Sequence record: NC_041916.1
DNA length: 64,000 nucleotides
Reading direction: 5' to 3' (one strand)
Part shown: positions 1-29,612 of the stretch, in pieces
Numbering within the stretch: position 1 is the first letter of the stretch
How the letters are laid out: the number at the start of each line of letters is the position of its first letter
The notes under the pieces: model-generated
What the model was told of the DNA's origin: nothing
What the model saw: the letters and a program-made list of their open reading frames with translations, nothing else
The model's database searches: none
Made by a program: the position numbers and the translations under genes

Positions 1-27
1 CCATATGGAGGAGAGGATAGTATTATG

Positions 28-378
28 TTAATCAGCGGCAGATTGATATGGGACGTTGAGTTCGTCCAACCAGTTCAACAAATCAGTGTCGTTAGGAATG
101 AACACCAAGATGCGATTCAGATTGGCTTTCTCCAAACACTGGAAATGGGAAACCAAACAATCTCGGGACATGTACTCCATAACCACCACAGGCACTTTGG
201 TGGATTCACGATTGTACAAATACGAACACTCAGCGTGGGTATCGTATTCCATTCCAACGTAGATGTGATTTAACTCATCTAAGTTACGAATGTCTTTACA
301 ATCATCCTCTCTGGTTGAGTCGTATGTCCAGACCTCCACACCATGCCAACGTTTCGGTTCTGTGACGTTAGTAGACAA
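28..378 (-). CDS. hypothetical protein; resembles the two modules of the adjacent 206-aa protein
   Basis: 116-aa ORF overlapping the upstream gene in operon fashion; ends ILVFIPNDTDLLNWLDELNVPY, like VYIECGNGLSKLMTEKGIQHI in the neighbour. Confidence 0.75.
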   Translation of the reverse strand: MSTNVTEPKRWHGVEVWTYDSTREDDCKDIRNLDELNHIYVGMEYDTHAECSYLYNRESTKVPVVVMEYMSRDCLVSHFQCLEKANLNRILVFIPNDTDLLNWLDELNVPYQSAAD

Positions 379-26573: not shown

Positions 26574-26593
26574 CCCTACCCGTTAAGGTAGGG
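26574..26593 (-). terminator. intrinsic terminator (CTACC family)
   Basis: CCCTACC/GGTAGGG stem, T-run downstream on the minus strand. Confidence 0.7.
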
Positions 26594-26599
26594 GATAGA

Positions 26600-27082
26600 T
26601 TATTTTACCGGAGCTGCGCTCAAGTTATCAAAGTAGAAGGTTTCACCGATGAAAGGTTTCAGTATGTCTTTCATGCGTTCACCTTCTTCTACGTCGATGT
26701 CGTAAGCCACAGACATGTGTGCAACGTAATCGTCCCAACCATGATCATAGCCCGCCGCTAACCAACGCTGGTGTTCTTCTTTAAGTTGATCAGAACGCAT
26801 CACAAACGCTAACGCTGATTGTTTACCGTCTTTGATCGGACCCATCAGTTCAATGGCGACGACTTCACCTTCATAAACCGTGGTCGGGTCGATTTCTTGT
26901 TCTAAGGTAACGTGGCCCAAATCTTTGTCGTAGGCAATCGTGCTATGGAACTTACCATCATCGATAGGAGTAACACCTTGTTCGATTAAGATGTCACGAA
27001 TACGTTCACATTGATGGAACGCCAAATCAACAGAAACGTAACCCTTAGGTTCAGTAACAATAGGATCTAAATTAATTTTCAT
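26600..27082 (-). CDS. acb1: 2H phosphodiesterase, Acb1 (T4 gp57B)-like anti-CBASS candidate
   Basis: Two HxT/S motifs (H46-S-T48, H122-M-S124); KFHSTIAY and ALAFVMRSDQLKEEHQ..AGYDHGWDDYVAHMSVAY parallel T4 57B as recalled. Confidence 0.75.
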   Translation of the reverse strand: MKINLDPIVTEPKGYVSVDLAFHQCERIRDILIEQGVTPIDDGKFHSTIAYDKDLGHVTLEQEIDPTTVYEGEVVAIELMGPIKDGKQSALAFVMRSDQLKEEHQRWLAAGYDHGWDDYVAHMSVAYDIDVEEGERMKDILKPFIGETFYFDNLSAAPVK

Positions 27083-27605
27083 TGTTTAGTTCTCTAGGTT
27101 TTAAATAAAGTAAATCACCATGATCACCAATCCCGATTTCTGGGAGAAGGTTACCGTAGACTTGCTCTAACCAGTCTGGGTCTTGGTGGACTTCTAACAT
27201 CAGCTGTGCGCTGTGGCAGTAACTGAGTTCTTCTTTGGTGGGAATGTAAATGAACGCCACTTCTTCAGGGGAAACTGAGATATGACTGTCGTGTGTGCTA
27301 TCAGGTGCGGTGTTACTGATAACGTTAAAACGACGACCGTCCCAACGGGTATGCAGACCACACTCTGGTTGTTCCCCACCTAATACCGTTCCGTCTTTCA
27401 AACGAAGGTAATAAGGTAAGGTGTAAGCACGTCCGTTGAACTTATGCCATATCCCCGGATAGAACGGATGATGGTTCAAGTAATCGTTATTTACTGGAGG
27501 GGATTCCAACGTATGGATGCCTTCAGATAACGATTTGAGTAACTCGGAGGTTTGACAGTCCGCTTTCATAGCGATGTGAATATCACTGATCAATTTCTTA
27601 GCCAT
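27072..27605 (-). CDS. hypothetical protein
   Basis: 177 aa, AAGGA SD, overlaps downstream start. Confidence 0.8.
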   Translation of the reverse strand: MAKKLISDIHIAMKADCQTSELLKSLSEGIHTLESPPVNNDYLNHHPFYPGIWHKFNGRAYTLPYYLRLKDGTVLGGEQPECGLHTRWDGRRFNVISNTAPDSTHDSHISVSPEEVAFIYIPTKEELSYCHSAQLMLEVHQDPDWLEQVYGNLLPEIGIGDHGDLLYLKPRELNNEN

Positions 27606-27607
27606 GA

Positions 27608-27901
27608 TTACTTCCTTGTTAGGCGGTAGAGTTTAAGAAAGTCGGGATGGAACTGACTGCGCCACCCACAGCTTGGACAAACGAACTGTTCACCATCATA
27701 ACTCGTCCTAGGCAATTCATCACACTTCTTATAGTTACCACAATAAGGTGTGTAACGAGGTCGTGTGAGTATGTTGCATCGTACGGTAGTGCCCACTAGG
27801 GGATGACGATAAACGGCATCCTCTTCGTTAGGGCTGATGGTTTCTCCAGCTTTGACTTTCTTTAAGATTTTCTTAACGGTTTGATTGGATATCGGAGCCA
27901 T
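27608..27901 (-). CDS. small zinc-ribbon protein
   Basis: PYCGNYKKC and FVCPSCGW cysteine pairs. Confidence 0.75.
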   Translation of the reverse strand: MAPISNQTVKKILKKVKAGETISPNEEDAVYRHPLVGTTVRCNILTRPRYTPYCGNYKKCDELPRTSYDGEQFVCPSCGWRSQFHPDFLKLYRLTRK

Positions 27902-29462: not shown

Positions 29463-29573
29463 TTGTATATTTTTATCTTTCCGTATATTATCTTAAATTA
29501 TCCTACGGATTTGAGCTTAGACCCCCTCCCCCAAAATAATAGACAAACCAGTAAAAAAATAATCAACGGTAAT

Positions 29574-29603
29574 AACCCTACCTCCCGTTAAGGAGGTAGG
29601 GTT
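29574..29603 (-). terminator. intrinsic terminator (CTACC family)
   Basis: AACCCTACCTCC/GGAGGTAGGGTT 12-bp stem. Confidence 0.8.
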
Positions 29604-29612
29604 AGTTTATTA

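Follow-up and report, generated by a model that had tools for sequence, protein, structure and literature searches.

The gene gp030 (FDH33_gp030) of Vibrio phage pTD1 encodes a 2H phosphodiesterase of the Acb1 family, with similarity far beyond chance, and the encoded chain ends at the point where the lid of T4 Acb1 starts, i.e., the C-terminal tryptophan lid is absent. We infer from homology that the protein is an Acb1-type cytoplasmic phosphodiesterase that degrades cyclic di- and trinucleotide alarm signals and would protect the phage, a reading to which we assign a probability of about 70%. The presumed substrates and the anti-defence role derive from this homology, and a putative lid function of the N-terminus from analogy with the BCSR5 enzyme PDE-9.

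The window, i.e., the whole 64-kb stretch of DNA that was analysed, is identical (100%) to the first 64 kb of the pTD1 record (AP017972 / NC_041916, 239,276 bp), and window coordinates equal record coordinates. In the NCBI taxonomy pTD1 belongs to Chimalliviridae, Gorgonvirinae, Tidunavirus, i.e., to a nucleus-forming family. The features discussed below are collected in Table 1.

Table 1 Location of gp030, its functional elements and neighbouring features in pTD1
Feature	Coordinates	Strand	Remarks
gp030 (FDH33_gp030), Acb1-family 2H phosphodiesterase	26600..27082	-	160 aa, ATG start; stop codon 26600-26602
N-terminal extension, codons 1-13 (MKINLDPIVTEPK)	27044..27082	-	disordered in model; candidate N-terminal lid
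G14-Y15-V16	27035..27043	-	Y15 aligned with T4 Y12 (nucleobase stacking)
First catalytic motif H46-S-T48	26939..26947	-	corresponds to T4 H44-S-T46; H46 and T48 invariant in 33 sequences
Second catalytic motif H122-M-S124	26711..26719	-	corresponds to T4 H113-I-T115; H122 invariant in 33 sequences
Last core beta-strand and C-terminus, codons 148-160 (TFYFDNLSAAPVK)	26603..26641	-	A157 aligned with T4 E141, K160 with T4 K144
Terminator-like hairpin, CCCTACC..GGGTAGGG then T-run	26574..26593	-	six bases past gp030 stop; consensus scan only
gp031, PHROG 29790	27072-27605	-	177 aa; overlaps gp030 start by 11 nt
97-aa ORF, zinc-ribbon-like paired Cys (…YCGNYKKC…CPSCGW…)	27608-27901	-	unannotated gap between gp031 and gp032 in NC_041916
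Second terminator-like hairpin	29573-29604	+	

The gene and its family

RefSeq names the product of gp030 'RNA ligase' and GenBank 'phage protein'. M1 is the first possible start downstream of an in-frame stop, and the only in-frame alternative before Met80, a TTG at Leu20, was rejected as it would remove the first beta-strand; for both reasons the 13 residues preceding that strand belong to the protein. The gene is present as a single copy, since a six-frame Pfam search of the whole genome returned the same single PF23474 match, and comparison with the orthologue of phage VP4B (84% nucleotide and 94% protein identity) gives a dN/dS of 0.04, i.e., gp030 is under purifying selection.

Membership in the Acb1 family is supported by several kinds of comparison. 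The Pfam Acb1 model (PF23474) matches residues 15-139 over profile positions 4-122 of 144 and scores 48.7 bits (gathering score 27; E 8.6e-13), and the LigT-type model 2_5_RNA_ligase2 (PF13563) stays under its threshold (17.4 bits, gathering score 27). T4 gp57B is matched by BLASTP at E 1e-8, PHROG 755 ('RNA ligase') at E 2.7e-32, and a profile-profile comparison of the vibriophage and T4 groups gives a probability of 96% and E 3.4e-9 over the core only (38-132 vs 36-123). Homologues of gp030 were detected by tblastn in 125 of 50,697 phage records, including the annotated gp57B of JS98, JS10 and IME08 and the jumbo phages EL, RisingSun, Miami and those related to Rak2. A word-based protein search, too shallow to reach T4, found three close relatives with the single protein and ten with a seq profile of seven sequences, all of them carrying PF23474, and a deeper alignment was assembled from phage records and IMG/VR loci. 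In IMG/VR, the pTD1 protein and profiles A1 and A2 recovered Gorgonvirinae phages only and the Miami homologue, used as query, gave no match; PADLOC and NCBIfam scans gave none either. The Acb1 entries of the PDB were found weakly by single sequence, more strongly by profile and clearly by structure; the top of the PDB sequence search, a leucine-rich-repeat 'cell surface protein' (4GT6, E 1e-4), was dismissed, its match being short, repeat-like and limited to residues 20-47.

The AlphaFold2 model built on a 33-sequence alignment (mean pLDDT 87.6, pTM 0.82, values <50 at residues 1-8 only) predicts a compact 2H phosphoesterase fold that is nearest to the solved Acb1 structures, with a helix at residues 131-140 following the second histidine motif and a terminal beta-strand at residues 148-157 (pLDDT about 90). 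Its best matches in Foldseek and VIA are the phosphodiesterase of Burkholderia phage BCSR5 (9Q2Y, 1.5e-7, Z 15.5, 2.7 A over 147 residues; 9Q2G, 6.9e-7, Z 14.8, 2.8 A over 145) and FBB1 Acb1 (7T26, 8.6e-7, Z 15.1, 2.5 A over 136; 7T27, 5.6e-6, Z 14.8, 2.5 A over 134), well ahead of plant CPDase 1JH6 (7.3e-4, Z 12.1, 4.1 A over 148) and LigT 5LDI (2e-2, Z about 10, 3.6 A over 139). Every LigT, CPDase and Usb1 entry ranks 3-5 Z units under the four Acb1-type structures, whose rmsd is also lower (2.5-2.8 A vs 3.6-4.1 A).

A preliminary description of this DNA had placed an Acb1-like phosphodiesterase here, and the interval that it named is exactly one minus-strand ORF of 160 aa. The Acb1-like identity is borne out by the Pfam, BLASTP and profile-profile scores, and the HMM and structure comparisons proposed along with it both put gp030 with Acb1; the grouping with LigT or other 2H families that it had named as contrary evidence is seen neither in the Pfam scores nor in the structure ranking.

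The name 'RNA ligase' was discarded as proof of a ligase function, given that RefSeq applies it equally to T4 57B, a proven Acb1. It is a carry-over from PHROG 755 and stands on 57B of NC_000866, gp030 of NC_041916 and gp126 of NC_007623, and most jumbo-phage clade members are labelled 'RNA ligase' or hypothetical; UniRef names the orthologues of Aphrodite1 and PDCC-1 'Anti-CBASS protein Acb1'. As applied to T4 57B and its homologues, the label systematically misnames anti-CBASS phosphodiesterases.

Catalytic residues, base contacts and the missing lid

T4 Acb1 has the catalytic tetrad H44/T46/H113/T115 (HxT/HxT), stacks on the bases of its ligand with Y12, W74, F107 and W147, reads adenine N6 with E141, and closes a lid (residues 145-152) that becomes ordered over the ligand, the closed pocket shutting out rings of >3 bases (Hobbs et al. 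2022, PMC9117128). We checked this numbering by counting along the T4 sequence. Both catalytic motifs have clear counterparts in gp030 (Table 1); the threonine position of the second motif is occupied by Ser in all jumbo-phage homologues but the BCSR5 enzyme, which has Thr in common with the T4 type. As for the base contacts, the aromatic residue at T4 F107 is kept as W116 (residue table), T4 W74 falls on either Met80 or Gly81, according to the alignment used, with no aromatic residue within L79-M80-G81-P82, E141 falls on Ala157, and W147 has no counterpart, i.e., three of the five T4 nucleobase contacts (W74, E141, W147) are missing.

In three independent MAFFT alignments the gp030 end D-N-L-S-A-A-P-V-K160 pairs with T4 D-R-E-Y-K-E141-P-L-K144, and T4 L145-D-W147-A-D-D-L-K152 is left unpaired. 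The structure alignments agree: residues 12..160 of the model lie on 1..137 of the 144-residue FBB1 chain, stopping before the FBB1 lid, and residues 9..160 lie on 12..165 of the 165-residue BCSR5 protein (147 aligned). The last strand, TFYFxNL..P, is strongly conserved, and the chain ends straight after it; therefore there is no C-terminal tryptophan lid over the substrate. The profile-profile alignment of Gorgonvirinae and T4-type proteins covers the core, and the C-terminus was placed by the global and structure alignments instead; we infer the equivalence of A157 and E141 from the global MAFFT alignment (EP motif) and the structure-alignment end point, the local profile alignment ending at 132. 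Ala at this position is seen in pTD1, VP4B and the near-identical metagenomic P0001, the other Gorgonvirinae orthologues having Glu-Pro.

The GYV, H46-S-T48 and H122-M-S124 motifs of the preliminary description all sit exactly where it had put them. It had also read the end, AAPVK, as lacking the Glu/Trp-containing C-terminal segment of T4 Acb1, which holds for the lid and W147, absent by alignment and structure alike, and fails for the glutamate, whose position is present and holds Ala157.

The missing C-terminal lid is not special to pTD1; it is the norm for its jumbo-phage clade. In a survey that took in Gorgonvirinae, EL-like phages, RisingSun, Miami, Rak2-like phages and BCSR5, all jumbo-phage homologues examined end at the T4 K144 position or one to three residues away from it and have no Trp lid, and LDWxxDLK is carried by Straboviridae-type proteins only (residue table). 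The homologue of Miami (MT701590 85722-86111) is, from its annotated start, a protein of 129 aa without the first strand and its Gly-Tyr motif, and the tblastn match begins 54 nt upstream of that start, which was probably miscalled.

The N-terminal extension

The 2H phosphodiesterase PDE-9 of BCSR5, a Burkholderia jumbo phage (9Q2G, 9Q2Y), has its lid at the N-terminus (residues 1-15) and not at the C-terminus (Doherty et al. 2025 preprint). By analogy, it is possible that residues 1-13 of gp030 act as an N-terminal lid. This extension holds no aromatic residue and no net positive charge, and its sequence is not conserved; relatives have 3-13 residues ahead of the conserved Gly, and orthologues 4-13. 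In most clade members from outside Vibrio the first strand is preceded by no more than 2-3 residues (the Miami start being uncertain), and these seem to be without any lid.

Gene neighbourhood

The order RNase H, 97-aa ORF, Acb1 homologue, gp029 is conserved in six Gorgonvirinae phages. The 97-aa ORF has counterparts of 44-79% identity at the same position in VP4B, PDCC-1, 2 TSL-2019, USC-1 and Aphrodite1; it gave no Pfam or PHROG match and is probably a missed gene. Into this otherwise conserved order gp031 is inserted in pTD1 and VP4B only, and we rejected it as a functional partner of gp030 on account of this restricted presence. The genes adjoining gp030 gave no defence-related matches. 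The hairpin behind the stop codon, found by consensus scan, suggests that gp030 closes a transcription unit. The two terminator-like hairpins of Table 1 have a common core, CCCTACC…GGTAGGG, which may be a recurrent intergenic stem-loop of pTD1.

Proposed function and alternatives

We propose that gp030 is made in the host cytoplasm and acts as a metal-independent 2H phosphodiesterase, most likely cleaving 3'-5'-linked cyclic di- and trinucleotides before these can activate effectors lethal to the infected cell. Candidate substrates are 3'3'-cGAMP, cUA and cAAA/cAAG of CBASS and, possibly, cA3 of type III CRISPR. As in T4 Acb1, H46/T48 and H122/S124 would provide the acid-base catalysis by which the 2'-OH attacks the neighbouring phosphate, with a 2',3'-cyclic intermediate, and Y15 and W116 would stack on bases. 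The pocket would then lie open, or the 13 flexible residues at the N-terminus would cover it. Such an enzyme could shield a nucleus-forming phage from signalling defences, to which the nucleus is no barrier. Against nucleus-forming phages, type III CRISPR with NucC has been documented; our search of the literature on CBASS in pTD1 hosts found nothing specific.

The loss of three base contacts and the unconserved N-terminal extension speak against this explanation, as do findings of Doherty et al. (2025 preprint): Panoptes was not activated by T4 Acb1 from which the lid had been removed, the lid was concluded to be necessary for catalysis, and two structural groups of phage 2H phosphodiesterases cleaved none of 18 messengers. 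The missing contacts and these findings would also favour a gp030 that, being lid-less, is unable to hold cyclic oligonucleotides and persists as a weak binder or one without catalysis, or else serves some unrelated purpose, a reading that we regard as very improbable indeed: both HxT/S motifs are invariant, the dN/dS is 0.04, the last strand is strongly conserved, and PDE-9 could still cleave 3'3'-cGAMP after deletion of its lid (Doherty et al. 2025 preprint). LigT, 2'-5' RNA ligase and plant CPDase have the superfamily fold and HxT/S chemistry in common with gp030. The RefSeq name would make gp030 an RNA-end or nucleotide-metabolism enzyme (a LigT/CPDase-like 2',3'-cyclic phosphodiesterase or a 2'-5' RNA ligase) with a role in RNA repair instead of counter-defence, which is quite improbable, as the Acb1 model lies over its curated cut-off and the LigT-type model under, Acb1 structures are the closer ones in both Z and rmsd, and 'RNA ligase' is a legacy family name.

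An Acb1-family enzyme with shifted substrates, its pocket re-tuned because W74, E141 and the lid with W147 are gone, is unlikely, and it could take several forms: it might spare 2'3'-c-di-AMP and so not trip Panoptes, like PDE-9, drop the adenine requirement, or act on rings of greater size, for instance the cA4/cA6 of type III CRISPR. The residue table is consistent with such a shift when set beside the adenine reading by T4 E141 and the closed T4 pocket that bars rings of >3 bases, and so are the action of type III CRISPR signalling on nucleus-forming phages and the properties of PDE-9, which is likewise without a C-terminal lid and selective against 2'3'-c-di-AMP. However, sister phages keep the Glu, Ala being confined to pTD1, VP4B and P0001, and specificity is set by the core and not by the lid (Doherty et al. 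2025 preprint). Extended to the whole jumbo-phage clade, the idea of a functionally distinct lid-less Acb1 branch, which without W74, W147 and, in pTD1, E141 would have an open pocket and a different messenger spectrum, is rather unlikely; if true, this branch could attack oligoadenylates of type III CRISPR beyond cA3 in size, or leave 2'3'-c-di-AMP intact and evade Panoptes, and would represent a tailored cytoplasmic shield of nucleus-forming phages against signalling defences that get past the nucleus.

Significance

Nucleus-forming phages escape DNA-targeting defences and stay exposed to defences that signal by small nucleotides, and a cytoplasmic enzyme destroying such signals would make sense as one of their counter-measures; a 2026 review still gives Tad1 as the sole anti-defence protein so far described from jumbo phages. 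The identification of gp030 is already known, both from Pfam/UniRef-based annotation and from the preprint of Doherty et al. (2025), which curated 75 phage 2H phosphodiesterases found by structure search, purified 16 candidates, and lists 'NC_041916.1__YP_009599317.1__FDH33_gp030' in its Supplementary Table 1; YP_009599317 carries no PDE number there, i.e., it is outside the 16 purified candidates. In the published literature we found no mapping of the gp030 end point, no mention of the loss of W74/E141/W147, no report of its activity and no assay of any member of the jumbo-phage Acb1 clade. Activity in this clade, if shown, would fill a small gap and correct the widespread 'RNA ligase' annotation, and the gain is incremental because the family, its chemistry and its lid variability are published and gp030 is catalogued.

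Comparison with known systems

Compared with the Acb1 of T4 and of Erwinia phage FBB1 (7T26, 7T27), gp030 has an identity of 23-24% over the whole alignment and 28% in the best local segment. It differs from T4 Acb1 in having neither lid 145-152 nor W147, Ala157 for E141, Met80/Gly81 for W74, HxS instead of HxT as second motif, the extra helix 131-140 after that motif and four more N-terminal residues. In the maximum-likelihood tree gp030 falls into a jumbo-phage clade, apart from the T4 type and from BCSR5, both of which sit on long, uncertain branches. This clade comprises the Gorgonvirinae orthologues, Pseudomonas phage EL, Erwinia RisingSun, Klebsiella Miami and the Rak2-like phages Munch, BF and GAP32, and its members are like gp030 in having Leu/Met at T4 W74, the HxS second motif, a chain end no further than T4 K144 and no Trp lid; at the E141 position the sister vibriophages keep Glu, whereas pTD1 and VP4B have Ala.

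PDE-9 cleaves 3'3'-cGAMP and largely spares 2'3'-c-di-AMP, so that Panoptes is not triggered (Doherty et al. 2025 preprint). We recovered the BCSR5 sequence and aligned it with gp030: both are without a C-terminal lid, have a matching C-terminal end point (BCSR5 …LTFDGLKATRMM and pTD1 …FYFDNLSAAPVK align end-to-end) and a helix after the second His motif, and start with MKI…, the conserved Gly-(Leu)-Tyr-Val being preceded by an extension in each. However, identity is about 20%, the two do not group in the tree, the extension is about 12-13 residues long in gp030 vs about 16-17 in PDE-9, where it carries Arg/Tyr, and PDE-9 keeps a Trp at T4 W74 and an HxT second motif, gp030 neither; an N-terminal lid function has been demonstrated for PDE-9 alone. 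gp030 is a member of a known family, and its lid-less build has a characterised precedent in PDE-9.
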